Part shown: piece by piece, positions 2,572 through 42,480 of the stretch
Layout of the letters: every line of letters begins with the position of its first letter
How positions within the stretch are numbered: the first letter of the stretch is position 1
The notes under the pieces: model-generated
The model's database searches: none
Told to the model about the DNA's origin: nothing
What the model saw: the letters and a program-made list of their open reading frames with translations, nothing else
Program-made: the position numbers and the translations under genes
Assembly: GCF_036365525.1 (NCBI RefSeq)
Contig: NC_090404.1
Location: 5,456,001-5,520,000 of the forward strand
Length of the DNA: 64,000 nucleotides
From: Heterodontus francisci
Taxonomy: Eukaryota
Direction of reading: 5' to 3'

Positions 2572-3327
2572 AATATTACCGATCTGGAAATCTATCATTA
2601 CTGAATTGATAAAACATTTTAAACACAAACCACTGTCGGAGAGGGCGCAGGAAGCATTTGTTTAAATGACAGGGAGAGTTCATTCTTTGCGTATATAGTG
2701 GATATCTACCTGGATATTGACAATGTCACTGGACTGGCTCATATTGTAACCTGACCCTCAGTTGCTGGACTGAGGGAAGCTACCGGGTCTGAGGCTCCGT
2801 CCTTCAATTCAGATGTTTAACTGAGGCCCCGCCAGCCCGTTCAGGGAGATGTTAAAGAATCCCCGGCACTATAGGAATAAGAGCGGGAAGGGAGGATTCT
2901 CCCGGTGTCCTGGGCCCACATTCCACCCTCAACAAACACCACCCAACAGAAACACATGCACCGACCTCCCAGCTCATTACTGTGGGTGAAAGGAGGACGG
3001 CAGCCTCTGCTGACAGAACAACTCCCCCAGCCCCACCCCCTGTACATCAGACTAATGTGGGAGGGAATTTCACATCGAGTTCATAGACCCAATGAAGCGA
3101 GAGAAAACTGCAAGTAACCTTTTTAAACCTGTCTCTCATTCACACAGCACACAGCCAGCCACCCGGGAACCGTGCGGCCCATCAAAGATCTCCGGAACAC
3201 TGCCCTCTGCAAATCGATCCCCCTGAAGTATTTCAGTCCAGCTCTGAGGTCCAGTCTCCCAGAGCAGTCCAGGACTGCAGTCTCCAGCTCCCCGTCATAT
3301 AAACCATCAGCTCCAGGCAGCAGAACG

Positions 3328-3800
3328 ATGGGAATCCTCCTTGTTTTCACCCTGTGTGTCTGTTTACCCCGTGAGTACCGATCAAACAAACCGACATTGT
3401 GTGGATTTAATATAAAACTGCCCGAGTCCATCCGAATTACAGTCACTTTCTGGGGTTTTAGCCCCGTTATGTGGTTCGGCTCTGATGGCCCATTAAACTC
3501 TCTCTGTTTAATTTCCAGGCTCTTTCAGTCAGTCAGTGACACAGACCCCGGCAGCGGTGACCAGGAAGGAGTGTCAGTCTCTCACCATCAACTGTGTTTT
3601 CTCTGGTGCTTCATGGGATTATTTCCAAAATGGACATTTCTTCAGACAAACCCAGACCAGCACAGAGCAGGAGCGGATCTCCAGCGGAGGACGATTTGAT
3701 GTGTCTGTGAATAAGGCAAAAAATACATTTTCGCTAGAAATTCTGGATATGAGAGTTGAAGACACCGCCACCTATTACTGTAAAGCTGAGTACAAAGACA
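3328..3800 (+). CDS. NAR-TCR V segment (IgNAR-like V), cassette 1; leader exon 3328-3370, V exon 3519-3800
   Basis: Leader MGILLVFTLCVCLP and a GT..AG phase-1 intron. V reads SVTQTPAAVTRKECQSLTINC...ISSGGRFDVSVNKAKNTFSLEILDMRVEDTATYYCKA: VNAR-like, with C'/C'' (CDR2) deleted and an extra Cys in the A-B loop. Confidence 0.92.
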
Positions 3801-3838
3801 CACAGTGATGGGCCTTGGCTTCCCGCGGTACAAAATCT
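3801..3838 (+). other. RSS of NAR-TCR V (22-bp spacer, 23-type)
   Basis: CACAGTG-22-ACAAAATCT. Confidence 0.9.
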
Positions 3839-4153
3839 CTCACTGCAGATTATCACAGAAACAAATTATTAAAAAGCGGATTGAATCTGCCGTCAAGCCC
3901 CACAGTTCCGTGTCGCACCGTCAGACCACAATCTAGTTTATAATGAGATTGGCATTTTCCAGGTAACATCTGGAGTTATATTAATGCAGAATGTGTGCAG
4001 ATGATGCCGCCATTGCCGGGATTGGTGTCAGTGAATGGTAATTGGGAATGACTGATCACAGTTACAAATCCCTAACACCAGATGGGATCCTGTTCTAACA
4101 GCTGGAACCGGGAACCCTTTAACAATTGTCCCCACATCTCGCCAAGTACAGGG

Positions 4154-4223
4154 GGATTTGATGCTGACTTGAAGCACAGTGTTTATTGGGCTGGCCACAG
4201 TGGGAGAGACCTGAGCAAATACC
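4154..4223 (+). other. NAR-TCR D segment (4182-4195, TTTATTGGGCTGGC) flanked by 12/12 RSSs
   Basis: GGATTTGAT-12-CACAGTG [D] CACAGTG-12-GCAAATACC. Confidence 0.88.
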
Positions 4224-4547
4224 TCTATACAATTGAAATAGAAATTCCCAGGGCTCGGATGCTAAATTGCAGGTTTGATGTTATTATCGCTGTAATATGG
4301 TTTCATTTTATTGTAATTTTCTCCTTTCTATTATCTTTCTCTGAAATTTTTCTCAATTTCTATGAAGCGTCCATCTCTGGCCCGTGTTTCTGGGCCATTT
4401 TACCAAGAGCTCAGAGTCTCACAAAGAACAGTTGGTATCGACAGGGAATATGAAACATGGAATATTGTTTATTAGTCTCAAATCCCTCGAATAATTGGGC
4501 AGCACCGACTGTCTGGTGATGTGTAACCAGCAGATTGAGGTGTCGGT

Positions 4548-4639
4548 AGTTCTTGCACAGGGATGACTGAGAGCGGTATCACTGTGTTCCAAGATTAAAT
4601 ACGTGGATGGATCCGGGACAGTGGTGACTGTCACAGCGG
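4548..4639 (+). other. NAR-TCR J segment (4587-4639) with 5' 23-RSS
   Basis: AGTTCTTGC-23-CACTGTG, then SKIKYVDGSGTVVTVTA (NAR-type xGxGT motif without W/F) and a phase-1 donor GTAAGT at 4640. Confidence 0.9.
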
Positions 4640-5329
4640 GTAAGTGACTGCAAACCCTGCCGTGCAGCTGACTGTCAGACTGAATGTTCACCCTCAGTTT
4701 ATTATTGCGAACAATATCACCTCAATCTCTTGAAAATAAAACAGAGCAGTTTCCTCATGGACATTTTCCACTGCAGTTTTAGATTCAGGGCAGACTATGA
4801 ACCGTGAGTCGGGTGCAGGTTTGGGTCTGGAGACATGAGGAGAAATTCCCACAGAGAAGGCAGTCTGTGGGGTGCGGACCTCATCTGGACCATCGCAGGT
4901 TTAGCGTGGACTTCGGAGGATCCCCAAAACATCCCAAACTCTTTCTCACTCTGATCCACAGTTGATTTCAATGAGTGCAGATTGTCGAGACTCCGGCCTC
5001 CGCTCACCCTCTTCACTGTGACTGAGTAAACTCTGCCTGTCCCTGTGAGCATGGGAGAGGGTGACAGAATATTCCATTCCGGGATGGGCAGTGTGAATGT
5101 GGTATCGGGAAACTGAGCCCACCACTGCAGCGGCTCCTTTGACACTTGCAGCCACATGTCTGATGCCGTCAGTTAAATAGGGGACATAGTATATTCCCAA
5201 TGCTAATTTAGCAAGTTTGAAAAGCTAAGTCAAGGCTGTAGAGCTGAGTACCGATTTGGGTGAAATCCAGCAGTTTGAGTCAGGAAGTGATGGATGGATT
5301 AATGAGAGTAATAGGCCCTGGACGACTAA

Positions 5330-8300
5330 GGCCAGATCAGGGAAAAATAGGAAAACACTAAAATGAAAGACGTTACATCTGAATGCACGAAGCAATTGTA
5401 AGACGACAGATTGATTAATGGCATAAATACAGATCAATGTAATTGATCTAGGAGGATTACTAAGACATGGATACAGAATGACAAAAGTTCGGAACTAAAT
5501 ATACAAGAGTACTTGACTTTTGGGGAAAAAACTAGGCAAAATGAAAAAGACAACGGGTAGGCCGGATAATAAAGGATGAGATAAAGGCAGTATTGAGAAA
5601 GGATCTAACACCAAAAAGTCAGGATCTAAAATCTGTATGGTGCAGCTAGGAAATAACAAAGCGCAGAAAATATCAGCACATTTAAAGTAATCATGTTGTT
5701 AGAGAGAGTATAAATCAGGAAGTTAGAAGAGCATGTACCATGATGAATACAATAATCATGGGGGCCTGTAATCTCTATGTAGAATGAGCAAAGTAAATTG
5801 ACAAAAGTAGATGGGAGAATAAGTTTCAAGACTGCATTCGAGACACCTTTCTCGAACAATATGTTGCGGAAAGTAACTTTGAAATTGACTATCTCAGATC
5901 TAGTGCTTTGACACGAGACTGTATCAATTCATTATCTGAAAGTAAAGGATATTCTGGGGAAGAGTGATCATAAGATGATAGCTGTCATCTTCAATTTGCG
6001 CGTAATGTGGTCAAGCCCGAAACTGGGTTCTTATTTTTAAAGGCCAATTACGGAGTTATGAAGGAAGTGCAGGGTGAGCTAGATTGGAAGTCCAGATTAA
6101 AATCTATAATGTTCGATGAACAATTGTAAACAATTAAATAAATAATTTACAATTCTCAACGAACATACATTCCATTGCGGAATGGACAACTCCATTGGAA
6201 AAATGGTATAGCCATGTATAGTTAGAGAAGTTAAAGATCGTGTAACATTCAAATGAGAACCTTACAATGTTGTCAGAGTAGTAAACCTGAAAATTAGGAG
6301 GCTTTTAAAAATCAGCAAAGAATGACCACAAAATGATGAAGAGGGAGTAAATGAAATATGACAGTAAACTAGCATGAAAAATGAAAACAGATTGTAAGAA
6401 CCTTTGCAATTTTGTTAAAAGGAAGAGAGCAGTGAAAGTAAACGTGGGCTCTTAGAAGCAGAGACAGGAAAAATCTCTTTCGATATTTTGTGTCTGCATT
6501 TACAGTAGAGGACATAAAGAACATAATGGAAATTGTGGAGAACCAAGTGAAGAAGTTAAAGCATTTAATATTAATAACAAAGACGCTGAATAAATTAATG
6601 GGGCTAGAAGCTACACATCTCCTAGAACTGATTGCCTAGTCCGAGGGTCTCAAAAGGGCGAATGAAATTATTGGTTTGATCTCAGAATTCTCTCGATTCT
6701 GGAACGGTGGATTGGAACTGAGAAAAAGTTATCCCGTTGCTCCAGAAAAGAGAGACAGAGACAACAGAGACATATAGGCCAGCTACCATCAGTAATATCC
6801 CAAATAATAACAAAAATGGGAGATGGTAATAGGACAACCGGAAAATCATAATAAAATTATGCAGAATCAACATGGCTTTATGAACAAGAAATGATACTTG
6901 AGAAATCTATTCGTCTTTTTTGAGGTTTCACTAGAAGGGTAGTTAAAAACGAACCAGTGGATGAAGTATATTTGGATTTTCAGAAGGCATTCGATAAGGT
7001 GCCACACAGCAGGCTGTTACACAGGAGTAGAGCTCATGGGATTAGGAGTATTATAATAGCATAGATTTAGGATTTGTTCAGTGACAGGAAACAGAGAGTA
7101 GGAATAAATAGACCATTTTGGGGATAACAGGGTGTAACTAGTAACATACGATCGGAGTTTGAGCCTTAGTTATTTCCAATCTATACCAATGACTTCGATG
7201 AGGGACCCAATATAGTATATCCAAGTTTGCTGATCATATAAAGCTAGGTGGGAAAATAAGTTGTGAGGAGGGTGCAAGCGTGCTGCAAAGAGACAAAGAT
7301 AGGTTAAGTGACTGGGAAAGAAAGTGGCAGAAGGAGGATATTGCGGGAAAGTGTGACATTATTACATACATAGGCTTACATAGTTTATGCGTGGGTTTCC
7401 TCCGGGTGCTCCGGTTTCCTCCCACAAGCCAAAAGACTTGCAGGTTGGTAGGTAAATTGGCCATTATAAATTGTCCCTAGTATAGGTAGGTGGTAGGGGA
7501 ATATAGGGACAGGTGGGGATGTGGTAGGAATATGGGATTAGTGTAGGATTAGTATAAATGGGTGGTTGATGGTCGGCACAGACTCGGTGGGCCGAAGGGC
7601 CTGTTTCAGTGCTGTATCTCTAAACTAAACAAGAAGCAGGCCTTTCGGCCCAAATAGTTCATGTTGGTGCTCATGCTTCACTCAAGCCTCCTCCCATCTT
7701 TCACCATCTAATCTATCATCGTAACTGGCAAATCCCGTCTTCCCCATATGCTTATCTAGCTTCCTGTAAATGCATCTATACTATTCACTTCAACCACGCC
7801 CCATGGTAGCAATTTCCACATTCTCCCCATTATCTGAGTAAAGAAGCATCTTCTGAATTGCCTATTGGATTTATTGGTGACTATCTTTTACCGATGGCCT
7901 CTAGTTATTCTTCTGCCCACAAGTGGAAACATTCTCTACTTTATGAAAACTTCCATAATTTTGAAGACCTCCATTAGTTCATCCCTCAACCTTCTTTATT
8001 GAAGAGCAATAAGACACAGCCTCTTCATCCTTTTCTGATATGTCGACCCACGCATTTCTGTTATCTTGTAAATTTTCTCCGCACCCTTTCCAGTGCCTCC
8101 GAATCCTTTTTATAATAAGACGACCTGAACTGCATGCATTACTCTTAGTGTGGTCTAATCAAGGTTCGATACAAGTTCATCAAAGCTTCCCTACTTTTCA
8201 ATTATATTTCTCTAAAAATAAAGCCTATTGCCTTGTTTGCTTTTTTACGGCCTTGCTAAACTATCGCTTAACTTTTAGCAATTGGTGCATTTGTACTCCG

Positions 8301-9075
8301 AGATCCCTTTGTTCCTCTACCCCACCGGGACTCGCACCTTCCAAGTGATTAGTGACCTCCTACCAAAAAGTATCATCTCACATTTATCTGTGTTGAATAT
8401 TATTTGCCAATTATTTGCCCATTCTGCAAGGTCATTAATGTCTTCCTGTAATTTGTTGCAGTCCTCCTCAGTATTGACTACCACCCATCCTCCCAGCACA
8501 GCAACAACACCCCCCCCTCCCCCCACCACCGTCAGCCCCACCTCCACCACCCCAGCACCCAAAATTTTCTGTAATCCACACATTTAAAAATTGATGTTTT
8601 GATTCTGAAGTTCAAATCGTTAATATAAATTGTGAACAGCAGTGGTCCCAGCTCTAATCCTTGGAGAAAAACAATTCCCAGCGTCTGACATTCTGATTAA
8701 CTATCCTTTTACTCCTGCTAAAGTTGTTTGCCAGGGTACAGTTGGAGAAAATGTTTTCAGTTATCAGCTGGCCGATAACAAAGAGCCATAAATGTAAGAT
8801 ATTAATTTACTGAACAAATAAAGACATTAGGAAGAATTTATTTACACAAATAGAAGTCAGGACGTGGAACTCGCTGTCACAGTGAGTAGTTGGAGAATAT
8901 GGCCTTGATGTACTTTAGGGGAGGCTTGTAAAATATATCAGGGAGAAAGGAATAAAGGGACAAAGAGGTCAGGATGGGAAAAGGTTATTAAAGTGTGAGG
9001 TGGCTCCTGTGGAGTATAAAATCAGACATAGGCCAGTTGAGCCGAAAGGCCTGTTCCTATTCTGCAGAGTCTGTA
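5330..9075. mobile_element. Cluster of old CR1 ORF2 fragments (+ 5330-7375; - 7630-8700; + 8720-9075) in the J-to-supporting-V intron
   Basis: Degenerate endonuclease and RT motifs (e.g. FQKAFDKVPH, EEDCNKLQEDINDLAEWANNWQ). Confidence 0.8.
7388..7630 (+). mobile_element. HE1-like shark SINE, 5'-truncated
   Basis: Same body and tail (gggcctgtttcagtgctgtatctctaaactaaac) as the full copy at 19472. Confidence 0.8.
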
Positions 9076-10029
9076 CAATATTAAAATGAGAGAAACTCTG
9101 CTTTGTGAACAGGATAACTACTCAGCCAATGGGTGTACGAATTGAAAATATCAGACAGCCGGAAGAGCTAGTTCCCAGTGAGTAACAGTTAAACCACTGC
9201 GGAAACTGCACAGACTGAACCCAACCGACAACTGAGAGAGTTTGGGACAAGTTCTCACGATGACAAAAACCGCAAACAATTGAGTGACCCAGATTTAGAA
9301 GTAAAATGAAAATACCAATATGAACTCGCAAGTAAAGGGAAACGGGACAAAACAGTACCCTTATTGTGAAAAACGCAAACAAATAGAGCTTCAGGGAGAC
9401 AAAAACTCTGTTGAAGAGTGAAACTACAATTAAATTCTGATCTCCTTAAATACAGATGTTAAGCATCACTTGGCTCCACCATGTTCATGAATCTCACTGC
9501 TTTCTGTTGGATCTTGCTGTGCTCAGTTAAACATAACAAAACTGGGCGACGATCGATCAAACATTGTGAATGGTGATTGTCTCCGTGAGGCCGAGAATAT
9601 TCTATTGACTGTTTCGACTGTCTGTCTTTCACAAAGAAATTAGAAACAGAAATGTCATAGAAACTTGAGTCTGATAGAGCACAGAATGAAGTCATTCGGT
9701 CCATCTTTCCCGTGCCGGCTCTGTGAAAGAGATAGTCAAATAGTTCCATTGCCCTGCTCGTTCCCCATAGCCCTGATAATTCTTCCATCTCCATTAACAA
9801 TCCAATTCCCTATTATTGAATCCGCTTCCACTGCCTTTCCAGGCAGCGCATTCCGGGTCATAACAGCACTCTGTGTGAATAATCTTCCCAGTAAAAATTA
9901 AGAAAGTTCGAACGGACTTCAAATGAAGAACAGCATTACCGCGGAAGGCGGTGCCCTGTCTGTGATTGACAAGTGTCTCCGGGTAAACAGCAACTAACAA
10001 CATAATAATATCATCTTTTCATTCTGCAG

Positions 10030-10335
10030 ATTCCAGTTCCCTGGTCTCCCAGAGTCCGCTTCGACAAACCGCTGCTGCCGGGGACACTGCTACTTTCAGC
10101 TGCAAATATTCCGGGATCTGTCAGTACACAGTAAACTGGTACAGTCAGTCCACAGGGCAGACTCCGAAATACCTGCTTCAAGTACTCAACTCAGGAGCGC
10201 AGAATAAAAAGACTGCAGCCGGGGGACGAATTTCTGCTTCTATCGATCCTGCCGAGAAAATCAGCCGGTTAGAAATCTCCAAATTACAACTGAGCGACTC
10301 CGCTGTGTATTACTGTGCACTGAGTCGGCGCATAG
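10030..10335 (+). CDS. Leaderless supporting TCR-delta V exon of NAR-TCR cassette 1
   Basis: Acceptor ttctgcag is in frame with the J donor (G|AT = Asp). V reads DSSSLVSQSP...FSCKYSGICQYTVNWYSQ...LSDSAVYYCALSRRI, with an extra Cys in CDR1. No hydrophobic leader exon was found upstream. Confidence 0.9.
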
Positions 10336-10693
10336 CACAGTGATACAGAGCACGGAGAGAGCTGTACAAAAACCTGAACATGGTGTGGATTACAGTCACA
10401 GTGATACAGAGCACGGAGAGAGCTGTACAAAAACCTGAACATGGTGGGGTTCACGGACATGGCACAGTGATACAGAGCACGGAAAGAGCTGTACAAAAAC
10501 CTGAACATGATGGGAATTACAGACACACAGTGATACAGAGCACGGAAAGAGCTGTACAAAAACCTGAACATGGTGGGGTTCACGGACATGGCACAATGAT
10601 ACAGAGCACGGAAAGAGATGTACAAAAACCTGAACATGTTGGCAATTACAGACAAACAGCGACACCGAGCAGGGAGGGAGCTGTACAAAAACC
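10336..10693 (+). repeat. Tandem array of six 23-RSSs
   Basis: Heptamers at 10336, 10397, 10463 and 10526 (CACAGTG), 10592 (CACAATG) and 10655 (AACAGCG). Each is followed by a 23-bp spacer and ACAAAAACC; periods are 61/66/63/66/63. Confidence 0.95.
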
Positions 10694-10724
10694 TGAACGT
10701 ACCAACAATAAATTCATGGCTGAA

Positions 10725-11500
10725 CTGTTTGCTCCACATTCCCTCCTATCCGCGATAACTTTCCACCCCTTCCTTATCAAGAATCGATCTACCTCTGCCT
10801 TAAAAATATTCAAAGACTCTGTTTCCACCGTCTTTTGAGAAAGAGAATTCCAAAGACTCACACCCTCTGAGAGAGAAAAAATTCCTCATCTCTGTCTGAA
10901 ATGGGTGTTCCTTTATTTTTAAACAGTGAACCCTAGTTCTAGATTCTCTCACAAGAGGACACATCCTTTCCACATCCACCCTGTCAAGACCCTTCAGGAT
11001 CTTATATGTTTCAATCAAGTCGCCTCTTACTCTTCTAAATTCCTGCGGATACAAGCCTAGCCTGTCCAATCTTTCCTTGTAATACACACATTCCAGGTGT
11101 TATTCTCTGTACTGCCTCCAACGCATTTACACCCTTCCTTAAATAAGGAACAATACTCCAGATGTGGTCTCACCAATGCCCTCTATAGATGAAAAATAAC
11201 CTCCCTACTTTATCATTCAATTCTCCTCACAATAAATGATAACATTCCATTCGCTTTCCGAATTACTTGCTGTACCTGCATACTAACCTTTTCTGATTCA
11301 TGCACTAGGACACCCAGATCCCTCTGCATCTCAGAGCTCTGCAATCACTCACCATTTAGATAATATGCTTCTTTTTTAATCTTCCACCCATAGTGGACAA
11401 TTCCACACTTGCCCACTTTATACTCCATTTGCCAGGACTTTGCCCACTCACTTAACCTATCTATATCCCTTTGTAGCCCCCCCTGTGTCCTCTTCACAAG
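10725..11500 (-). mobile_element. CR1 LINE 3' fragment
   Basis: ORF 10800-11087 reads RRVRGDLIETYKILKGLDRV. Confidence 0.85.
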
Positions 11501-11608
11501 ATAATCCAGAGATTATTGCCTTTGAGGTTCTACTTTTTTAATTTAGCCCGAGCTGCTCATGATCCCGAAACAGAAACTCTTTCCTGATCCTACCTATGTT
11601 ATGGGAAC

Positions 11609-13362
11609 TGTCAAGACCGAGGTGGGAGTAATGCACTGTCAATTCAGTGCCACCACTCCACAGGTCGCACCATAGTATTAAAGTTGTCCCACCCACCAGA
11701 AAACAGACACATTAAACATTTTATTAATCCCCAGAATAAAATACACTAAAACCTGGAAACTTTAGACGACAACAAATTAGCTATTTATTAATAAACTAAA
11801 TCTTAAACACTATTGAGATAACTTTATGGCTAAAGACCTTATAACTTCTTTATTGTCATAACCACCCTCCCCCCATGCACACACACATCGGGCTGAATTT
11901 TACCAGCACCTCGATGTCATGGGTCATGGAGCGGGGACCGGTAAAATTCTGCAAAGAGAGGCCCGCCTCGACCCGTGACCCGTGACATCGGTGAGGACCC
12001 GGAGCCTATTACCGGCAGCGTGGGAACCTTAGTTCAACCACTCACGCACGACCACCGCCACCACCACCCCCCCCCATCCCCTCCCACCGCCACCCCCGCC
12101 GCCTGGGTCATCTGCATATGCATATTGTACCAAATGTGATGCAAATAAATTTAACGGCCATCCCACACCGATTTTACGGCCACCGTTCATCTTTCGCGCA
12201 CCTTCGGAACTGCGCACCGAGTTCTGAGTTGAGAACCTGGGTGGATGAATACAATTTTCAGGGCGGGAGGGGTAGAGAAGCGGGGAGATCAATTTTTATT
12301 AGATGTGGGGATGGTTAGAAAGGGTTATAGGCCAAATGTTAGAAGTTGTGGGTAAAGTTCAGGGAGGGGAAAAAAGGCATGTTTTGATTATTCTGTGGAA
12401 TTGAAATGACCATTGATGGGTTGGGGAAGGGCCTCATATCTTTATTACCTGTTTAATAAAAAATGTCGTGTACTTTGCCTTTAAAAAATAAAACTTCATC
12501 TGTGGGCTTAAAGCCCTTTAAAAATGGCGCCGGCGCCTGTGCTGTGGCGCCTGACGCCGTTGCCGCTGGTCCACCCCGCATGTAATATCATGGGAGTTCC
12601 TCCGCGGCACCTCTGTGTCGGCGGCCGCCGAGTTGAAAGCATGTCGCCGCGGAAAACGGGCACGTGATTAAAATTCAGTCCAGATATTCAAAACTCAATG
12701 GTTAACCGGTTTTAAACATAGTATTTCTTGGGAATAAAATAAGTGGCTGCTTTTTAAGTCCTGCTGGGTTACGTTCCCGGTTGATGAGGTGTCCCAGAGT
12801 ACAATAAGCAGATGCCACTCGAAGTCTCCAGGCGACAAAACAGTCTTTAATAGATAGGTATTCAAAACATTTCAACTGCAGCAGGTGTCACACAATTCTG
12901 TCAACGAGGAATATAGCAACAGGTCTATTTGGATTTAGAAATTGGTAGTTTTTTAGTAGAAACTTTACTGAGAATTCCAGCACACACAAACAGACGAAAG
13001 AGAGTCACTCTTGAAGCAAATAATTCCGAAGTGAAAAGGAATTTCTAGCATCAACAATGCAAATGCTTTTTCCAGGGTTTCTTTCTCCTTCGACAATACA
13101 CAACCTAAACATAAATGTAGATTTTCCTGCTAAGTGTGCATTCTGCACACTTCGCTGATCTCAAGGTTAGTCTGGTTTTTGCTGGTTTTTACACACAGTC
13201 AAACGTTGCAGTACAACATGTGACCTCCCACTCCTGCTGTTGCCTAGGAAACATGTACAGCTGCTGGCACACTGTGCCCCTTCGTTTTTAAAAGAACACT
13301 GTTTTTAAACAGAGTGTTCAAGGCAGACTGTTTTAAATAGAAGGGGGGAAAGTTCCATGACA
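11609..13362 (-). mobile_element. Probable solo LTR inserted in a CR1 ORF1 relic
   Basis: TGTCA...TGACA termini with a near 4-bp TSD (gaac/gcac). One end resembles the sequence at 28855-28922. Confidence 0.55.
11890..12681. mobile_element. Non-autonomous DNA transposon (MITE-like) nested in the LTR
   Basis: Terminal inverted repeats gggctgaatttta / taaaattcagtcc. Confidence 0.55.
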
Positions 13363-13948
13363 GCACCCACATGGACCAGGACAACTGGATCCCCTCCCCC
13401 TCCCACTACAAGTTCCTCTCTGGCCACGAGTCGATGTCCTGAACCCTGGCACTAGGCAGGCAGCAGAGCCATGTGGACTGGCACACTCAGCTGCAGGGGT
13501 ATCTATCTATCCCCTTGACTGTACTGTCCCATACAGACATGCCATTTCTATGTACACCACTCACCACCCACACCCCCCCCCCCCCCCGCCCGCCCCACCA
13601 CCACCACCACAACTTGAATGGCTCCCTGCACCATGGTGCGATGGTCAGTTAACTCATACAGCTTGCAACCCCTACTCTCGTCCATACAAGCTGCAAAAGC
13701 CTCGAACTTGTTGGACCTTCTGAATCCCCATGCCTGCCTTAGTCACAGTTACAATCTCCTATTCCTGGTCACCAACAAAATCAGAGGACCCTAGCCTCCA
13801 GGGTGTGACTGCCTTCTGGAACAAAGTGCCCAGGCAACTTTCCCCTTCCCTGATGAATCTCTGTGTCCGAAGTCTAATGGTGACCATGAAACCATTGTTG
13901 ATTGTTGTATAAACAAACATCTGGTTCACTAATGTTTTTTAGGGAAGG

Positions 13949-16900
13949 CCTAGTCACTGGGGAGCAGAGGGAGAACGGACCCGGAGGGGCGGAGCATCGA
14001 AGCTATGATTATAAATAACGTACCTCGAGGATTTCACGGCCTAGTCACAGGGGACCAGAGGTAGAGCAGACCCGAAGGGGCGGAGCATCAGAGCTGTGAG
14101 TATAAATAACTTACCTCGGGAATTTCGCGGCCTAGTCACCGGGGAGTGGATATAGAGCAGACCCGCAGGGGCGGAGCTGCTTTCGCTGCTTCAGTGCTCC
14201 AACAGAAACTGAGAAAAATCTGAAATAAGTGACGTCACAGGAAAACTGGTCGGGAATCTGCACTAAATTTGACAAACTATTTGAAAATTTTGAAAGCCTA
14301 ATTAACTAAAATAAAGAAGAGATGGCAGGGTGGGCGACGTGCCACAGCTGCATGATGTTGGAGCTGGTAGATCCCATTGCGAGCCACAGTGACGACATCT
14401 GCAGCAAGTGCTTGCAGCTCAAAGAACTTCAGCTCAGAGTTGATGGGCTAAAGTCCGAGCTTCAGACACCGCGGCACATCAGGGAGGGTGAGAGGTTCCT
14501 GGACACTGTGCTTACAGCAGTCTCACCGTGTAGATTAAGCATCTCAAATTCGGCCAGTGGTCAGGGACAGGAGGATGTGACTGCAAGTGAGGCAGGTAGA
14601 GGGATCCTGAATTCAGCAATGGAGGTGCCTCAGCTCTTGACCTTGCCTAACAGGTATGAGGTACTTGCTCCCTGTGTGGATGAGGAAAAGGACTGTAGGG
14701 ATGATGAACAAACTGACCACTGCACCGTGGTACAAGAGGCCATTCATGCGGGGGGAGCAAAAAGAAAAGTGGTAGTGGTAGGGATTCCATAATTAAGAGT
14801 ACTGATAGCATCCTTTGTAAGCAGGACCGAGAGTCCCGCATGGTATGTTGCCTACCTGGTGCTAGGTGAGGGACAATTCTAACTCGTTTGAAAGGATATT
14901 GGAGAGAGAGGGAAAGGATCGAGTTGTTGTGGTCCACGTTGAGACAACCAACATAGGCAAGACTAGGCAAGAGGGCTTGTTTGGGGATTATCAGGAACTA
15001 GGAACACAATTAAAAAACAGGTCCTCAAGGGTTATAATCGCTAGATTATTACCCGAACCACGTGCACATTGGCATAGAGATAAGCAAATTAGGGAAGTAA
15101 CATGTGGCTAAAGGAGTGGTGTGGGAAAGACGGGTTCAATTTCATGGGGCACTGGCATCAGTATTGGGACATGAGGGAACTGTACCGTTGGGACGGGCTC
15201 CACCTGACCCGATCTGGGGACAGTGTCCTGGCGGAAAGGATAAATAGGGTGGTCACAAGGACATTAACCTAGTAAATGGGAAGGGGAGGGGGAGGCCTCA
15301 GGGGAAGTCAATACACTTTCAAAAGCAAGTAATAAGTCAGAGAGTAAAAAAACAGTCAGGAACCCTACTTCAAGAATTGCAGGTAATGACAAAACTGCAA
15401 GAAGTATACTGGATAAATCAGAAGAGAGAAATAATAATAACAGGTGAATAAAGCATCAGTGCTGAGGGACAGTTTAGGGGGTATAGCCCAAATAAGAGTT
15501 CTATATACAAATGCAGGAATAAACTAGATGAGCTGCAGGCGCAAATTCAAATGGAAGATTATGATGTGGTGGCCATTGCAGAGATGTGGCTGCAGGATGG
15601 TCGGGACTGAGAACTAAATGTACCTGGTTATAAAGTTTACAGGAGGGACGGGGAAAACGGCAGAGGGGGTGGAGTAGCCTTACTGATTAGAAATAATATC
15701 ACCTCATTGGTGAGGGAGGATATAAAGAGGGGAAAGCATCCAGTGGAGACCTAATGGGTGGAATTGAGGAACAGAAAAGGATCTAAAACTGTAATGGGTG
15801 TTGTGTAGCAGTTCTGAGGTGTTAGATTGTATCAATCCAAAAATTAGGCAAGTGTGAAACATAGGAAGAGTAGTATTAATGGTGGATTTTAACTTGCACA
15901 TAGATTGGGAGAGGCAGACTAACACCTGTCAGAAAGATTGTGAATTTCTGGAATGTGTCCGGGATAGTTTCCGACAGCAATATGTCCCAGATGTAACAAG
16001 GGGACAGGCAATATTAGATTTAGTTATGTGTAATTAGCCAAATTTATTTAGTAGCCTAATTGTGCGTGAACATTTATCAAATAGTGATCACAACATGATC
16101 GAATTCAAGGTAACGTTTGAAAGTGAAAAGCACAAATCAGCTATTAGAATTTTAGACTTGGGTAAAGCTGACTTTACCGGGAGACAGAGACTGTCCACGG
16201 TAAACTGGGTAGATCTGGTAATGGGTCAAACGACTGAAGAACAGTGGAGAATATTTAAAGAAACATTTAATGAAATACAGAGCGAGTATATACCCCTGAG
16301 AGGAAAAAGCTCCACTTCACAGAAAAAACAGCCATGGACAACTAAAGAGATTAGGGATAGCATAAAACAAAAAGAAATGGCTTACAAAAATGCAAAACGC
16401 AGCACAGATGCGGCCGAATGGGATCGATACAAAGACCAGCAAAGGGTCACAAAGCAGCTTATAAGAGCTGCTAAAAGAGATTATGAAAGGAAACTTGCAA
16501 GGGACATCAAAATCAATAAGAAGAAATTTTATAGTTACATAAAGGGAAAACGGGTGGTCAAGAACAATAACAAGAAATGCTGGATTCACTCAGCAGGTCT
16601 GGCAGCATCTGTGGAAAGAGAAGCAGAGTTAACGTTTCGGGTCAGTGACCCTTCTTCGGAACTGACAAATATTAGAAAAGTCACAGATTATAAACAAGTG
16701 AGGTGGGGGTTGGGCAAGAGATAACAAAGGAGAAGGTGCAGATTGGACCAGGCCACATAGCTGACCAAAAGGTCACGGAGCAAAGGCAAACAATATGTTA
16801 ATGGTGTGTTGAAAGACAAAGCATTAGTACAGATTAGGTGTGAATATACTGAATATTGAACATCAGCAAGTGCAAACCTGAAGAAAAACAACCTGAAAAA

Positions 16901-23660: not shown

Positions 23661-24979
23661 TAATGCACTTATGTTGATCCTGGTTGAAGGGAGGAATGTT
23701 GACCAGGATACAATGCGGAAACATGCGAGCCTTTAATGCCCATTTAATCAGACAAGGGGTGGAGGAGGGATTATTGGTTCAGATTGTCCCCAGAAAGATA
23801 GTGTCCTTTCAGCATTTGACCGATTGGAAACCTGGTTAATATACCCGGGTTCAGAAGTTGAAGTGGAATCCACAATCTCCTGATTCTGAAATCAGAACCA
23901 GGCCACAATAGCCAAGCAACTACAAAAATGCTTAATGAGCTAAGGTGCCATTTTATATCTACAGTTTCACCTTGACATTGGTTAATACCGTTACTGTTGA
24001 GCTTCCATATACTGATATCACAAATAGCAATTTCAGGAGAACAATTACGACAGCACAGAAGGAGGCCATTTGTCTCATCGTTGCGGCTCCTTGAACGAGA
24101 TATCCAATCAGTTTCATTCCCCTGGTCTTTCTCCAAAGCCCCGAAACTCGCAAGCTACAATAAAACCGAACTTCACAAATCCACCTGTGGCGGTGTAATT
24201 TACTTTTTTGTCCTTTGTTGCCCTTTCTGCGCCGACCTGCAATATGAAGCAACCCTTTCCCATCTCCCCCTGCCGCTTTTCCCAAGTCTTTGACCGCAGC
24301 CTGTTTGCAGGGTTTTTTTGATCAGAGTGTCTGGCTGACGCAGAGACAGTTCATGCACAATGAGCAGATTTACAAGGCAGTGACTGTGATCTTTAAAGCT
24401 AGCCCCCCCAAGCACAGAGTTCCCTCAATGTCCATTGTGCTTCTCCTCAGTGCTGGAATATTTTCTGTCACCGTTAATAATCCCGAGCTTGCTGGTGATA
24501 ATGGCCAGATCGGGGTTTCATTCCCTCCCTGGTCTCTAAAAGTGCAGCCATTTCCCTATCAGGACTCTGACTGGAGCCCAGCTCGAGGTTCATTCACTGA
24601 CAGGCAGCTCACGACCGAACAGTCTCACAGAACCACTGGAGACACAAGGAAATGATCTGAGAGCAGACTGAGATATGGCAGCAGATTAGTGGGGGTGGTG
24701 ATAAGAACGGGTGCCTTCAAATATGTTTCTGTGGTGGATGCGAATGCCCGATTGGATTCTGCAGCTTGTTTTCTCGGCCGCTCCTGGAAACAGTTGGGTG
24801 ACAGTTTGATCCGAGGTTAATTTGGTTTCCTCTCGGTGTGTATTTGAGCGCCTGACAGCGCGCTGCACATTGTGGCTGCATCTGCCCGCGATTCTACACA
24901 ACCCCCAACAGACAGGAGCTCCCACCCACAGTCCAAAGGCAGTTTTTGTACAGGGGTGAGACTGCTTTCCATCACTGTG

Positions 24980-25445
24980 AGTCTGAGAGCGCAGTAATAC
25001 ACGGCAGAGTCAGTCAGCTGCAGCCCCGAGACGGTTAAACTGGTGAATTTATTCGCGGTCTGGAGCTTTACAGAGAAACGGGTTTTAGCAAAATCTGCTT
25101 TATATTCATAATCATCATAATCCTTCCTAAGAATAAACTCGGGCTGTGTATCTGGGTGTTGTCGGTACCAGTATAAAGAATAGCTGCTCCTTGTAGTATC
25201 ATAGGTACAGCTTAAAGTCACCGCTTCTCCTTCTGTCTTAACATCTGAGGGCAGGAGCTGAGTGACAGAATCTCCATGACTCCGATCTGAAAAACAAGTT
25301 TAAACAGGAAAAGATCAGACTGACGACTGTTTAAAATTCAGATTTAAAACATGTTTGTGAAATGGGAGAAAAGATGAAATGTGTTTAATCCACAATTACC
25401 TGTCAGAAATGCTCCCCACACAACCCAGATGCTGAGCAGCCGCAT
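24980..25445 (-). CDS. TCR alpha/delta V segment, apparently functional; leader 25400-25445, V exon 24980-25286
   Basis: MRLLSIWVVWGAFLT / DRSHGDSVTQ...LSCTYDTTRSSYSLYWYRQ...LTDSAVYYCALR; RSS CACAGTG-23-ACAAAAACT at 24941-24979. Confidence 0.93.
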
Positions 25446-28949: not shown

Positions 28950-31900
28950 AATACTTGACGTGTAAAACTTATGTATCAAACAGACAGGTTGCGTGTGCTC
29001 TTTAAAGTTGCTCCCATCAAGCAGATGAGAGTTGGTGTCTGCATGGACATTAGGACCCTGCGGCAGTCCATCCGGCGGTAACGTGAGGTCGATTCAACCG
29101 TCCGCCATGTTTGTGTGCTGAGCTGTGCTCCAGAGGTGCCCTCTTGCCCTGACTATCGTTTCCCCATCTCCCCTGTCAGATTACTGGAGCTTTTGACCGC
29201 GGCTTGTTCACAGGGTTTATTTGATCAGTGTTGCTGGCTCAGAGGCAGTTTATATGCAATGAACTGATTTCAGAAGATAGTGACTGTGACCTTTAAAACA
29301 AGCCCCAAGAACAGAGTTCCCCCAATGTACATTATCCTTCCAAGTGTCTCTTCATTCTCTGTAAATGCAACTGGAAACTCTGAATATTACAGACCAGGAA
29401 ATTAATCATTACTGAATTGAAACATCATTTCAAATACAAACCACAGAAGGGCGGGGTGGGGAGGTGGGGAGGTGGGGTGGGGGTGGGGAGGTGGGGTGGG
29501 GAGGTGGGGAGGTGGGGTGGGGGGTGGGGAGGTGGGGTGGGGCTGGTGGTGGGTGCTGAAGCATTTGTTTAAATGACAGGGGGAGTTTATTCCTTGTGTA
29601 CATTGTGTATATCAACCTGGATATTGACAATGTCACTGGACTGTCTCATTTTGTAACCTAACCCTCAGTTGCTGGACTGAGAGAAGCTGCCGGGTCTGAG
29701 GCGCCGTCCTTCAGATCAGACATTTAACCTAGGCCCCGCCAGCCCGTTCAGGGAGATGTTAAAGAAACCCCCGGCACTATTGGAATAAGAGCGGGGAGGC
29801 AGGATTCCCCCGGTGTCCTGGGCCCACATTCCACCCTCAACAAACACCACCCAATAAAAACACAGGGAGCGACCTCCCAGATCATTACTGTGGGGGAAAG
29901 GAGGGCGGCCGCCTCTACTGACAGAACAACTCCCCCAGCCCCACCCCCTGTACATCAGACTAATGTGGGAGGGGATTTCACATCGGACTCACAGACCTAA
30001 TGAAGCGACAAAAAACTGCAGGTTCCCTCTTTAAACCTGTCACTTATTCACATAACACACAGTCAGAGACCCGGGAACCGTGCGGCCCATCAATGATCTC
30101 TGGGACACTGTCCTCTGCAAATCCGCTAAAGTATTTCAGTCCATCTCTGAGGTCCAGTCTCCGGTAATAGCGTCTGAGCCGACGAAGGCCACAGCAGGGA
30201 AAAATAGGAAAAAATAAAATGAAAGGCTCTATATCTGAATTTACGCAGCATTTGTAAGAAGACAGATGAACTAACGACACAATTGGGGATTAATATATTT
30301 GATCTTGACGCCATTGCTATGACATGCTTACAGGGTGACTAAAGTTAGGAACTAAATATACTTGACTTGACTTTTGGAAAAACTAGACAAAATGAAAAAG
30401 GAAACGGGATAGGCCAGATAATAAATGATGAGATAAAGGCAGTCGTGAGAAAGGATCTTAGACCAAATGTTAGGATCAAAAATTAGTACGGAGCTACGAA
30501 ATAAGAAAGCGCAGAAAGCACGAGTGGATTTAAAGCAATCATGTTAGATGGAGTATAAATCAGCAAGTTAGAGGAGCATGTAATATGGCGAATGCAATAA
30601 TCCTGGGGGAACTGTAATCTCTATATAGGGTAAGCAAACCAAATTGACAAAAGTCGATTGGAGGACGAGATTCTGGAATGCATTCGAGACACATATCTCG
30701 AACAATATGTCGAGGAAACTAACTACGGAATTGACTATCTAATGTTTTGTAACGAGACTGTATTAATTCATAATCTTAAAGTAACGGATCCTCTGGGAAA
30801 GAGTGATCATAACATGATAGATGTCATACTTAATTTGAGAGTAACGTGGTTAAGCCCGAAACTAGGGTGTTAAAATTAAAAAAGGCCAATTACAGAGGGA
30901 TGAGGGGTACACAAGCTGAGCTAGATTGGGAGTTTAGATTAAAATATATAATGTTCAACAAGCAATGGCAAACATTTAAATAAATAATTCCCAATTCTCA
31001 ACGAACATACATTCCCTTGAGGAATAGAAAACTCCACTGGCAAACTGGTGTGGCGATGGATAGCCCGGGAAGTTAAGGACAATATACAATTGGAATAAGA
31101 AGAATACAATGTTGTCAGAATAGTAAGACTGCAAAGGATGATCACAAAATGATAAAGAGGGGACAAATAGAATATGACAGCAAATTAGCAAGAAGTTTGA
31201 AAACAGATTGTAAGAAATTCTACATGTATGTTCAAACGAAGGGAGTAGTGAAAGTAAACGTGGCCTCTTAGAAGCAGAGACAAGAGAATTTATAATTGGG
31301 AAGAAGGAAATGGCCGACACCTTAAACAGATATTTATGTGTCTGCGTTTGTAGTAGAGGAGGCAAATAACATAATGGAAACTGTGGAGAATCAAGTGTCT
31401 AATTAGAGAGAAGGAGTTAAAATAATTAATATCAATAAAGAAAAGATACAGGAAAAAATAATGATATTAAAATCTCACAAATCCCCTAGAAGCGATTTCC
31501 AAAGCCTAGGGTTTTTAAAGAGGTATCTACAGAGATAGTGGAATTATTGCTTTGATCTCAGAATTCTCTAGATTCTGGAACAATACCCGTGGATTAGAAG
31601 GTAGAAAATGCAACCTGTTGTTCCAGAAAAGAGATACAGAGAAAACATGGAACTATAGGCCAGCTAGCATCATTACGATATACAAAATACTAGAATCTAT
31701 TATTGGGAACATAGTGATAGGGAAATCGGAAATTCATAATACAATTAGGCAGAATCAAAATGGCTTTATGAACGAGAAATCCTACTTGACAAATCTATTT
31801 GCGTTTTTGAGATTTCACTAAAAGGTAGTTAATAAAGAAACCACATTCTCCAGCCTTATTCATTATCTGTTATGGGATACCTCTTGCAAGGCGTTTTGCA

Positions 31901-34100
31901 AAAAAAAAAACCCAGATACAGTGCATTCAGTGCGTTACCATCGCCTACTCTCTCTGTTACCTCCAAAAAATCAATAATACTATCCGTTTTGACAGGAATC
32001 ACAATCACAGAGCGTTAACGTGCCGGTACAGAAAGCAATTGGGAAGGGAATTGATATGTTCGCCTTTATTGCAAGGGCGTTGGAGTGCAAGAGTAAGGAC
32101 GTCTTGCTACAATTATCTAGCGCTTTGCTGAGACTAAATCTGTTGTTGTCATTGACTGAATATTCGCAGCACTTCAGTTGACAGGAGTCCAAATATTTAC
32201 AGTTCGCTGAATGAAGGAATTACTTTTGATCACAGCCCTTGGCTGCTTCAGAGAACCAACACGGACACGACGGGCCGAATGAGCTCCTTCTGACCTGTAA
32301 CCACATATTGAATCTATATCATTCATTGACCTTGGCCTTTGATCCCTAGTTCCAGGTTCTCCACATTGGCCATATGGTCTACTGTTTCTCATCGCTCTTA
32401 TATTGTTACCTTGTGTTCTTAATAATACCACAGGACAATTCAGGAGGAACGTCTTCACTCAGGGAGTGGTTGGAATGTGCAACTCGCTATCACGTCGAGT
32501 AGTTGATAGGAACAAAATCAATGCATTCAAGGGGAAACTACCATAACACATGAGAGAGAAAGAATGGAGTGATACCTTCATAATGTGAGGTAATATAGAG
32601 TTGTAAGTTGGCTCGTGTGGAGCATAAGCACCGCATGGACAGGTTAGGCCGAATGGCCTGGTTATGCTGTGCATCTGGGTTGGTCTATGTAATACATGTT
32701 TCTCGTGTATGAGAGATAGGTTTGCAGGAATCCATCTGTATCCTTGGTTGCTGTTAATGAAAATAACAATTGGCAGTGAGCGAGTCAGGTCGAGCTACTA
32801 ATGTTGTGACAAAAGGAGCACAGGAACAGCCGAGAGAACGAGTGCAGATTGGAAGAAAGTAAATTTAGAACCAGCAAGAAATAATTCACCGAAAGGGAGA
32901 AGAATACCGGACTTCGCCGGCCAGACGGGAGTCTGGAGATACCGATCTCAGGGCTGTTCAAATACAATACAAAGCCGGGAAGTGAGCTTTGCTGGAGGGA
33001 CGGACTGCGACTGGACTCTGGACTTTTCCTCAATTTTGGATTTCTAATACTCCTGAGAAAATACATCAACAGCAATCCACACCTATCTGGAAAGATTCAA
33101 TAGCCTGAGGTTTTTTTTTATCTCTGGTAAAGAGAAGACCTCGAGGAGACCTGGTGGACATAATTAAAATGCTAAAGTTGTTCGCTCGGGTGCAGGTGGA
33201 GAAAATGTTTTCACTTGTCGGCGAATCCAGAACAAAGAGCCATAAATATAAGAAATTCACCGACAGAATAAATAAAAACATTAGGAAGAATTTATTGACA
33301 CAGAGTGGAACTGTCTGCCACAAGGAGTAGTTGCAGAATATAGGATTGATGCACTTCAGGGGAGGCTTGAAAAATACAATAGAGAGAAAAGAATAAAGGG
33401 ACAAAGAGGTCAGGATGGGAAGAGGTAATGAAAGTGGGAGGAGCCTCCTGTGGAATATAAAATCAGGCACAGACCAAGTGGGCCAAATGTCTCTTTCCTG
33501 CTCTGCAGATTCTGTACAATATTAACGCACAGGGTAGATGTCAGCCAATGGGCTGTAGGAATTGAATTTGTCAGAGAGATGAAAGAGCAGGTTCCCAGTG
33601 AGTAACAGTAAAAACAACCGCGGAAACTGCACAGACTGAAACCAACCGACAACTGAGAGACTTTGGGACAAGTTCCCAGGATGGCAAAATCCCAAAATAG
33701 TCACAAAATGAACGACCCAGACGCAGAAATAAAATGAAGTACCCATATAAATCTGAGATTAAAGTGAAATGGGGCAAAACAGGCCCCTTCTTGGGAAAAA
33801 ATTAAACACATCGAGCTTGAGGCAGGCAGGAGTTCCCTTGAAGCGTGTAACTGCAGTTAAGCTCTGATCTTCAACACACAGATGTTAAGCGTCACTTGGC
33901 TCAGTCGTGCTCATGAATCTCACTGCTTCCTGTTGGAACTTTCCGTGCTCAGTTAAACATATCACAGTGAGACAGAGCACGACGAGAGCTGGACAAAAAC
34001 CTCAACATGGTGGGGATTACAGACACACAGTGATAGAGAGCACGGAGAGAGTTGTACAAAAACCTGAACAAGGTGGGAATTACAGACACACAGTGATCAC
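28950..34100 (+). pseudogene. Third, diverged NAR-TCR cassette lacking both coding modules
   Basis: Colinear with 330-747, 2572-3259, 5308-6940 and 8750-9535. It jumps over leader-V-D-J at ~30162 and over the supporting V at ~33962. Confidence 0.8.
33963..34095 (+). repeat. Orphan tandem 23-RSS array (two full RSSs plus a third heptamer)
   Basis: CACAGTG at 33963, 34026 and 34089; ACAAAAACC at 33993 and 34056; 63-bp period; truncated by a CR1 3' end. Confidence 0.9.
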
Positions 34101-36518
34101 AGAATTATAGAATTGTTACAGCGCAGAAGGAGGCCATTCGGCCCATCCTGTTCGCACCGGCTCTCTGAAACAGCAATTCCCTCAGTCCCACTCTCTTTCG
34201 TCTGTTTGTGTGTGCTGGAATTCTCCGTAAAGTTTCTACTAAAAGACTACCAATTTCAAAATCCAAATAGACCTGTTGCTATATTCCTCGTTGACAGAAT
34301 TGTGTGACACCTGCTGCAGTTGAAATGTTTTGAATACCTATCTATTAAAGACTGTTTTGTCGCCTGGAGACTTCGAGTGGCATCTGCTTATTGTACTCTG
34401 GGACACCTCATCAACCGGGAACGTAACCCAGCAGGACTTAAAAAGCAGCCACTTATTTTATTCCCAAGAAATACTATGTTTAAAACTGGTTAAACATTGA
34501 TTTTTGAATATCTGGACTGAATGTTAATCACGTGCCCGTGTTCCGCGGCGACGCGCTTTCAACTCGGCGGCCGCCGACACAGAGGTGCCGCGGAGGAACT
34601 CCCATGATATTACATGCGGGGTGGACCACCGGCAACGGCGTCAGGCGCCACAGCGCAGGCGCCGGCGCCATTTTTAAAGGGCTTTAAGCCCACAGATGAA
34701 GTTTTATTTTTTAAAGGCAAAGTATACGACATTTTTTATTAAACAGGTAATAAAGATATGAGGCCCTTCCCCAACCCATCAATGGTCATTTCAATTCCCC
34801 AGAATAATCAAAACATGCCTTTTTTTCCCTACCTGAACTTTACCCACAACTTCTAACATTTGGCCTATAACCCTTTCTAACCATCCCCACATCTAATAAA
34901 AATTGTTCCCCCCGCTTCTCTACCCCTCCCGCCCTGAAAATTGTATTCATCCACCCTCCCCACCAGGTTCTCAACTCAGAACTCGGTGCGCAGTTCCGAA
35001 GGTGCGCGAAAGATGAACGGTGGCCGTAAAATCGGTGTGGGATGGCCGTTTCCTGCAGTTAAATTTATTTGCATCACATTTGGTACAATATGCATATGTA
35101 GATGACCCAGGCGGCGGGGGTGGCGGTGGGAGGGGATGGGGGGGTGGTGGTGGCGGTGGTCGTGCGTGAGTGGTTGAACTAAGGTTCCCACGCTGCCGGT
35201 AATAGGCTCCGGGTCCTCACCGATGTCACGGGTCACGGGTCGAGGCGGGCCTCTCTTTGCAGAATTTTACCGGTCCCCGCTCCATGACCCATGACATCGA
35301 GGTGCTGGTAAAATTCAGCCCGATGTGTGTGTGCATGGGGGGAGGGTGGTTATGACAATAAAGAAGTTATAAGGTCTTTAGCCATAAAGTTATCTCAATA
35401 GTGTTTAAGATTTAGTTTATTAATAAATAGCTAATTTGTTGTCGTCTAAGGTTTCCAGGTTTTAGTGTATTTTACTCTGGAGATTAATAAAATGTTTAAT
35501 GTGTCTGTTTTCTGGTGGGTGGGACAACTTTAATACTATGGTGCGACCTGTGGAGTGGTGGCACTGAATTGACAGTGCATTACTCCCACCTCGGTCTTGA
35601 CAGTTCCCATAACATAGGTCGGATCAGGAAAGAGTTTCTGTTTAGGGATCATGAGCAGCTCGGGCTAAATTAAAAAAATAGAACCTCAAAGGCAATAATC
35701 TCTGGATTATCTTGTGAAGAGGACACGGGGGGGGCTACAAAGGGATATAGATAGGTTAAGTGAGTGGGCAAAGTCCTGGCAAATGGAGTATAAAGTGAGC
35801 AAGTGTGGAAATGTCCACTTTGGCTGGAAGAATAAAAAAGAAGCGTATTATCTAAATGGTGAGTGATTGCAGAGCTCTGAGATGCAGAGGGATGTGGGTG
35901 TCCTAGTGCATGAATCAGAAAAGGTTAGTATGCAGGTACAGCAAGTAATTCGGAAAGCTAATAGATTGTTGTTGTTTATTGCGAGGAGAATTGAATACAA
36001 AAGTAGTGAGGTTATTTTTCATCTATAGAGGGCATTGGTGAGACCACATCTGGAGTATTGTTCCTTATTTAAGGAAGGGTGTAAATGCGTTGGAGGCAGT
36101 ACAGAGAATAACACCTGGAATGTGTGTATTACAAGGAAAGATTGGACAGGCTAGGTTTGTATCCGCAGGAATTTAGAAGAGTAAGAGGCGACTTGATTGA
36201 AACATATAAGATCCTGAAGGGTCTTGACAGGGTGGATGTGGAAAGGATGTGTCCTCTTGTGAGAGAATCTGGAACTAGGGTTCACTGTTTAAAAATAAAG
36301 GAACACCCATTTCAGACAGAGATGAGGAATTTTTTCTCTCTCAGAGGGTGTGAGTCTTTGGAATTCTCTTTCTCAAAAGGCGGTGGAAACAGAGTCTTTG
36401 AATATTTTTAAGGCAGAGGTAGATCGATTCTTGATAAGGAAGGGGGTGGAAAGTTATCGCGGGTAGGAGGGAATGTGGAGCAAACAGTTCAGCCATGAAT
36501 TTATTGTTGGTACGTTCA

Positions 36519-36747
36519 GGTTTTTGTACAGCTCCCTCCCTGCTCGGTGTCGCTGTTTGTCTGTAATTGCCAACATGTTCAGGTTTTTGTACATCTCTTT
36601 CCGTGCTCTGTATCATTGTGCCATGTCCGTGAACCCCACCATGTTCAGGTTTTTGTACAGCTCTCTCCGTGCTCTGTATCACTGTGACTGTAATCCACAC
36701 CATGTTCAGGTTTTTGTACAGCTCTCTCCGTGCTCTGTATCACTGTG
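36519..36747 (-). repeat. Tandem array of four 23-RSSs
   Basis: Heptamers at 36741-47, 36680-86, 36614-20 (CACAATG) and 36551-57 (degenerate); nonamers GGTTTTTGT at 36709, 36648, 36582 and 36519. Confidence 0.95.
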
Positions 36748-37053
36748 CTATGCGCCGACTCAGTGCACAGTAATACACAGCGGAGTCGCTCAGTTGTAAT
36801 TTGGAGATTTCTAACCGGCTGATTTTCTCGGCAGGATCGATAGAAGCAGAAATTCGTCCCCCGGCTGCAGTCTTTTTATTCTGCGCTCCTGAGTTGAGTA
36901 CTTGAAGCAGGTATTTCGGAGTCTGCCCTGTGGACTGACTGTACCAGTTTACTGTGTACTGACAGATCCCGGAATATTTGCAGCTGAAAGTAGCAGTGTC
37001 CCCGGCAGCAGCGGTTTGTCGAAGCGGACTCTGGGAGACCAGGGAACTGGAAT
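36748..37053 (-). CDS. Leaderless supporting TCR-delta V exon, cassette 2
   Basis: ORF 36740-37078; the protein is identical to that of 10030-10335. Confidence 0.9.
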
Positions 37054-42388: not shown

Positions 42389-42480
42389 CCGCTGTGACAG
42401 TCACCACTGTCCCGGATCCATCCACGTATTTAATCTTGAAACACAGTGATACCGCTCTCAGTCATCCTAGTGCAAGAACC
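42389..42480 (-). other. NAR-TCR J (42389-42441) with 23-RSS, cassette 2
   Basis: GGTTCTTGC-23-CACTGTG; FKIKYVDGSGTVVTVTA; GTAAGT donor. Confidence 0.9.

Follow-up and report, generated by a model that had tools for sequence, protein, structure and literature searches.

Tandem recombination signals behind a NAR-TcR supporting V-delta segment of Heterodontus francisci, probably an inherited minisatellite

The window, by which we mean the whole 64,000-nucleotide stretch of Heterodontus francisci DNA that was analysed, carries a NAR-TcR cluster with the following features:

3328 to 3370, plus strand: leader exon for the NAR-TcR V, with its ATG at 3328 and the splice donor gtgagt following at 3371, read from the sequence
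3519 to 3800, plus strand: NAR-TcR V exon (Pfam V-set, E = 3e-10), with a cysteine in the a-b loop (RKEC) and FFRQ in the place of WYRQ
3801 to 3838, plus strand: single recombination signal (RSS) of the NAR V, with a consensus heptamer, a 22-nt spacer and the nonamer ACAAAATCT
4154 to 4223, plus strand: NAR D segment (4182-4195) with 12-spacer signals on both sides
4548 to 4639, plus strand: NAR J, with a 23-spacer signal (heptamer 4580-4586) and a coding part (4587-4639), followed by the splice donor gtaagt
10030 to 10335, plus strand: supporting V-delta exon, leaderless (Pfam V-set, E = 1.3e-15), with a frame open to YYCALSRRIA

The 3′ signal of the NAR D (4196-4223) was obtained from a signal scan and its 5′ signal was read by eye. 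The exon at 3519-3800 is a NAR-TcR V, as it has a leader of its own, a cysteine in the a-b loop, no tryptophan in the WYRK motif and a relationship to VNAR, shark VNAR domains being its best solved relatives (E = 9e-21). The features that define this V family and its leaderless supporting V-delta are given in PMC1845163. The exon at 10030-10335 is a NAR-TcR supporting V-delta: a splice acceptor (cag, 10027-10029) stands immediately 5′ of it without a leader, it lies downstream of the NAR V-D-J, and its CDR1 contains an extra cysteine (motif SGICQY). The junctions at the NAR J donor (after 4639) and at this acceptor are both phase 1. The sole database protein relative of the exon (P0001, 65% identity) has SGICQ in common with it and ends within the V (DSALY), so it is uninformative on the signals. 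The original prediction had already taken this segment for a supporting V-delta of a NAR-TcR without a leader, and the acceptor, the CDR1 cysteine and the upstream NAR V-D-J all agree with that assignment.

The textbook arrangement is one recombination signal per V segment. Directly 3′ of the supporting V-delta exon there are six units, each made of a heptamer, a 23-nt spacer and a nonamer, arranged head to tail between 10336 and 10693:

10336 to 10374, plus strand: unit 1, heptamer CACAGTG, abutting the V and the sole unit able to join in frame
10397 to 10435, plus strand: unit 2, heptamer CACAGTG, the same as unit 1 over all 39 nt
10463 to 10501, plus strand: unit 3, heptamer CACAGTG, consensus nonamer and one spacer change, missing from the paralogue
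10526 to 10564, plus strand: unit 4, heptamer CACAGTG, consensus nonamer and one spacer change, missing from the paralogue
10592 to 10630, plus strand: unit 5, heptamer CACAATG with the CAC retained, a consensus nonamer and two spacer changes
10655 to 10693, plus strand: unit 6, heptamer AACAGCG without the CAC, a nonamer that remains consensus and four spacer changes

The spacer measures 23 nt in 6/6 units, within the 23 ± 1 nt of an RSS, and is followed in all of them by the A-rich nonamer ACAAAAACC. The CAC of the heptamer, described as important in PMC12711392, is present in units 1-5 and absent from unit 6. Only the heptamer of unit 1 abuts a coding segment; units 2-6 adjoin linkers in which nothing recognisable is coded. 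The array had been predicted as six 23-RSS units with linkers of 22-27 nt, four consensus heptamers, one CACAATG, one decayed heptamer and identical nonamers, a description that proved correct base for base. Linkers 1 to 5 are 22, 27, 24, 27 and 24 nt long and alternate between an ATTACAG type and a TTCACGGACATGG type, which results in a 129-bp higher-order unit. Tandem Repeats Finder reports both a period of 66 bp (5.7 copies, score 490) and a period of 129 bp (2.9 copies, score 603), and a pattern made of a consensus heptamer, 11-24 nt and a consensus nonamer is matched at 8 places in the window and at none in 100 dinucleotide-preserving shuffles.

The frame of the V (...DSAVYYCALSRRIAQ) ends in RRIAQ and runs into a stop codon, the TGA at 10341-10343, inside unit 1. 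Joins at any later unit would therefore carry this stop, and the earlier claim that the frame stops in the first RSS and leaves only unit 1 for productive joining is borne out. The distances between successive units are 61, 66, 63, 66 and 63 bp (10336-10698), with a mean of ~64 bp, or roughly six helical turns, so successive signals would face about the same side of the helix. We also considered the FR3 end of the V as the source of the linkers. Linker 1 agrees with TGTGTATTACTGT in 11 of 13 positions, a score reached by 12 of 500 shuffles, and the other linkers gave nothing, which leaves this derivation unproven.

The whole NAR-TcR cluster is contained in an inverted (tail-to-tail) 10-kb duplication, with one arm at 2847-13005 and the other at 34190-44183 (about 98% identity); the signal scan placed the NAR J signal of the second arm at 42442-42480. 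Together with a third array, the second arm adds the following features:

36748 to 37053, minus strand: inverted paralogue of the supporting V-delta exon, with zero substitutions relative to 10030-10335
36519 to 36747, minus strand: four-unit array of this paralogue, whose units equal units 1, 2, 5 and 6 exactly
33963 to 34103, plus strand: orphan array of two full units and a third heptamer, with no V in front of it and its 3′ side truncated by a transposable element

The original prediction had stated that no other V of the window has more than one RSS, a claim refuted by the paralogous V and its four units. Over 10 kb, 184 substitutions (1.84%) separate the two arms, and the arrays of the arms differ by exactly one 129-bp double unit, which the four-unit array lacks, the shared units being identical. 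The flank upstream of the orphan array matches the intron at 8716-9538 with 76% identity and then goes straight into a heptamer, while the orphan units themselves are 85-88% identical to those of the six-unit array. An equivalent of 9539-10335, that is, of the V exon and about 490 nt of the intron (~800 nt), is missing from the orphan copy, and the junction of this deletion lies at, or 1-5 nt from, the first heptamer. The tetranucleotide CATA occurs on both sides of the deletion (within AAACATA on the intron side and within GCATAG where the V ends), and either germline RAG cleavage or a microhomology-mediated deletion fits the loss of the orphan's V. The paralogue, for its part, is without 66 nt of the intron upstream of its V (9507-9572, compared with about 37475), and the left breakpoint of the orphan (about 9536) lies inside this same piece; the three homologous copies have three structures there.

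The three conventional Vs of the window (signals at 24979, 57262 and 63028) and both NAR Vs are followed by single signals, with unrelated spacers and flanks, which indicates that the array trait tracks descent within one V family. Among the conventional Vs, the one at 24941-25300 (signal 24979, minus strand) is intact (DSAVYYCALR), and so is the VH-like V at 62650-63066 (signal 63028; LEWV, TAVYYCA). The V at 56960-57301 (signal 57262) lacks a long open frame and contains a YCC motif; its heptamer is CACAATG, its spacer is 24 nt long, and it is probably a pseudogene. Two other tandem repeats were noticed in the window: just beyond the duplicated arm lie 2.5 copies of a 91-bp unit (13947-14177), and a G-rich repeat of 8/13/40 bp occupies 29453-29542.

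A search for runs with matching DNA gave some labelled as the same species and others bearing three further organism labels, and the array was compared, at 80% likeness, with the contigs of four runs. Contigs of one other organism (B) cover 10260-10445, from the V end through RSS1 and the linker to RSS2, and 10341-10515, from RSS1 to RSS3; those of another (C) cover 10320-10437 and 10410-10545. Tandem signals, two or three of them behind a related V in contigs of two other organisms, therefore exist outside the Heterodontus francisci assembly. The best-supported variants among those listed lie in the linkers (10386, 10396, 10449-10455, 10510 and 10515) and in the spacers (10484 and 10547). Among the variants listed none hits a heptamer and the nonamers display only one-base changes in the length of the A-run (10429, 10499 and 10501), which we regard as weak evidence. 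No contig of the four runs falls on 10580-10681, so that the count of six comes from the assembly, and short-word contigs cannot span such repeats; the same-species runs contain 0.38 of the sampled words. A few tens of nucleotides after unit 6 begins a transposable element of very high copy number (10716-10900), at which the summed contig depth reaches 10^5 to 10^6 in all four runs, other organisms included. A protein-guided scan and a scan with a generic tandem-RSS DNA pattern, both performed on metagenome contigs, produced no matches.

Regarding expression, one RNA-like contig matches 10029-10244 without any difference and continues for 88 further letters that lie off the stretch, as expected of a spliced transcript, which indicates that the supporting V, or its identical twin, is expressed. 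In run X5 there is almost no depth upstream of 10002, and inside the V-delta exon it is high. The RNA-like depth, several hundred in the body of the V, is 39, 27 and 22 across the stretch from RSS1 to RSS2 and about 4 or 0 further on. The drop at the border between the V and unit 1 is about 30-fold, which fits normal joining at unit 1, and the residual depth past the V could come from transcription of the germline locus, from carried-over DNA or from joining at distal units.

Next, we examined the conservation of the array, within itself and between the two arms. The number of differences from the RSS of unit 1 rises with the distance from the V, being 0, 1, 1, 3 and 6 for units 2 to 6. When the eight distinct units of the window are aligned, the variable columns are 3/7 in the heptamer, 10/23 in the spacer, 9/13 in the gap-free part of the linker and 0/9 in the nonamer, which remains invariant even in the decayed unit 6 and in the orphan array. 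A hypergeometric test of the nonamer against the other columns (0/9 versus 22/43) gives P = 0.004, a post hoc value derived from few and related units. The heptamers are kept no better than the spacers; only the nonamer is kept better. The invariant nonamer would be the sole hint of constraint, and its constancy may instead reflect a lower mutation of an A-rich motif without CpG.

Between the two arms, the longest interval free of substitutions extends from 10015 to 10749 and takes in the supporting V exon with its array and a further 50 nt or so. Over the 234 array bases that the arms share, 4.3 substitutions would be expected and 0 were seen (P about 0.013). The signals are no more constant between the paralogues than the linkers or the dead unit 6, so we read this lack of substitutions as gene conversion or regional constraint and not as selection on the extra signals. 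The second-longest interval of this kind (3724-4270, 546 nt) contains the 3′ end of the NAR V, its RSS and the D with both signals; it includes about 330 nt of spacer DNA and, like the interval of the V and its array, is centred on recombination signals. The NAR V exons of the two arms differ at 14 positions and by a 3-nt indel, mostly in or near CDR1, and the differences cluster at 3591-3617 (CDR1 and its vicinity) and at 3661-3684.

We consider it probable, with moderate confidence, that the array is an inherited minisatellite of signal plus flank, in which unit 1 works, the extra units being tolerated as by-products and not selected as a device. The properties of a minisatellite are found in it: its units, within a range of about 10-100 bp, follow each other head to tail beyond chance (Tandem Repeats Finder scores of 490 and 603; 0 pattern matches in the shuffles versus 8 in the window), and the copy number varies between the paralogues, the three arrays of the window having six, four and at least two units. 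According to this proposal, the repeat unit would be the V's own 23-RSS with about 24 nt of flank and would have originated by tandem duplication. The array would then have been passed down within the NAR-TcR supporting V-delta family while the clusters multiplied, with units being gained and lost continually through slippage or unequal exchange. Unit 1 would be the working signal. Units 2-5 appear competent by their sequence, so occasional cutting by RAG would be expected, and a joint at unit k would keep the V plus k-1 signals and be non-productive through the in-frame TGA of unit 1. Provided that a 12-RSS partner was left downstream, one of the proximal units in such a joint could serve for a second cut.

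Judged from the sequence, the balance leans towards a neutral repeat and away from the landing pad, the substrate for serial rearrangement and the decoy that the original prediction had put forward, given the decay of the units away from the V, the copy change of 129 bp, the survival of an array that has no V, and heptamers that vary like spacers. Three features speak against neutrality, namely the invariant nonamer, the substitution-free interval over the V and array, and orphan units that are more similar to their counterparts than the orphan flank is, and these fit constraint as well as they fit gene conversion. If competing signals were costly, one would also not expect so many of them to persist intact in different paralogues and organisms.

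A first alternative is that the extra signals are regularly used in thymocytes, either as decoys, by which productive joining of the supporting V would be reduced or delayed, or as a substrate for several tries, in which a distal unit would be joined first and the proximal units saved for a second join to a remaining 12-RSS. Units 2-4 would be suitable, as they match unit 1 in heptamer and nonamer and carry 0 or 1 spacer change, and in mouse and human TCR genes, signals lying 31-47 nt away from the canonical RSS are used in vivo as alternatives to it (PMC6857471). The same study reports that nearby signals of equal score are used at very different rates, so the sequence is no predictor of use, and the decay of the distal units also counts against this alternative. 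An RNA-like contig of a paralogue, with about 2-3% of the depth in the V body, continues past the V end across RSS1 and into RSS2. It would be compatible with regular use, but germline transcripts or DNA carry-over explain it equally well. Joints, loose ends and signal joints at units 2-6 were absent from the contigs, a form of data in which they would not show. Altogether we find regular use of the extra signals unlikely.

A second alternative is a selected pad for accessibility or recruitment, in which consensus nonamers spaced every 61-66 bp would bind the nonamer-binding domain of RAG1 or repel nucleosomes and in this way raise the use of unit 1 for a V without a promoter or leader of its own. 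It would explain why the nonamer is constant in every unit, even next to a dead heptamer, why no stretch is better conserved between the paralogues than the V with its array and why the trait is present in other organisms; in a published screen, moreover, functional nonamers are reported both to have affinity for the binding domain and to repel nucleosomes (PMC12711392). On the other hand, the intact heptamers of units 2-5 would divert cleavage from unit 1, the copy number varies with no sign of an optimum, the equally unchanged linkers and dead unit point to gene conversion, and an A-rich motif that lacks CpG may simply mutate less. We judge such a pad to be quite unlikely.

The third alternative concerns only the origin of the array and is compatible with the minisatellite that we favour. 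The duplications would be scars of RAG activity in the germline, where nicks or breaks at a signal, repaired by slippage or unequal exchange, would have duplicated the signal with its flank, and the same activity would have removed the V of the orphan copy. The structure of the orphan, in which the intron homology stops, the first heptamer follows at once and about 800 nt are gone, is congruent with this scenario, and rearrangement of Ig genes is known from shark germ cells (PMC2193156). However, the CATA microhomology makes an ordinary microhomology-mediated deletion sufficient, and nothing links the duplications themselves to RAG, so we assign this origin a low probability. Finally, that the array is real but its six units are an assembly miscount, by expansion in one copy or collapse in the other, as the lack of contigs on 10580-10681 in the four runs and the fraction of sampled words in the same-species runs might suggest, is highly improbable, since units 5 and 6 with their flank occur twice in the assembly, in paralogues otherwise 1.84% apart, units 3 and 4 copy no other unit (linker 3 differs from linkers 1 and 5), and a coverage hole proves nothing for short-word contigs that cannot span the repeat.

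The full-text literature searched, which did not extend to the original description of NAR-TcR, contained no description of tandem or multiple RSS arrays, in agreement with the statement in the original prediction that no such description was known. The NAR-TcR literature within the same reach describes the two V domains and not the germline signals of the supporting V. An array behind a V hence seems to be undescribed. There is a small chance that RAG uses the spare signals, or that the invariant nonamers keep the site open, in which case the array would be a genetically encoded dial, variable in copy number, on the use of a leaderless V. If so, it would offer this V several tries, a distal unit first and a proximal one later, in a receptor that needs two successful rearrangements. 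A V family with serial full-consensus signals, found across paralogues and in more than one organism, is in any event a natural competition substrate for RAG that requires no engineering, and three matters could be tested with it in the animal: the choice of RAG among equal neighbours, the re-editing of failed joints, and the effect of nonamer density on access. Should the extra units never be used, the position next to the coding flank or the local chromatin would outweigh the sequence of the signal. Such arrays can also mislead automatic callers of RSSs and V genes.

In secondary rearrangement or receptor editing (Ig kappa, TCR alpha) and in VH replacement, a failed or unwanted joint can be replaced by means of a remaining signal. 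Those systems employ the signals of other V or J segments, or, in VH replacement, one cryptic heptamer embedded in the V, whereas here the candidate spare signals would belong to the same V. [quoted passage not shown] As in those cases, the second signal of our array stands a few tens of nucleotides past the canonical one, on the same side of the segment. The signals in PMC6857471 are single, weak and dissimilar and lie mostly upstream of J segments, whereas the supporting V-delta is followed by up to five full-consensus copies of its own signal in a regular head-to-tail order, which are candidate signals by their sequence. With minisatellites, the array shares a unit of 61-66 bp, a 129-bp higher-order repeat, a change of copy number between near-identical copies and a degenerate last unit. 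What sets it apart from them is that its unit is a complete, functional-looking V(D)J recombinase site, placed where that enzyme acts.
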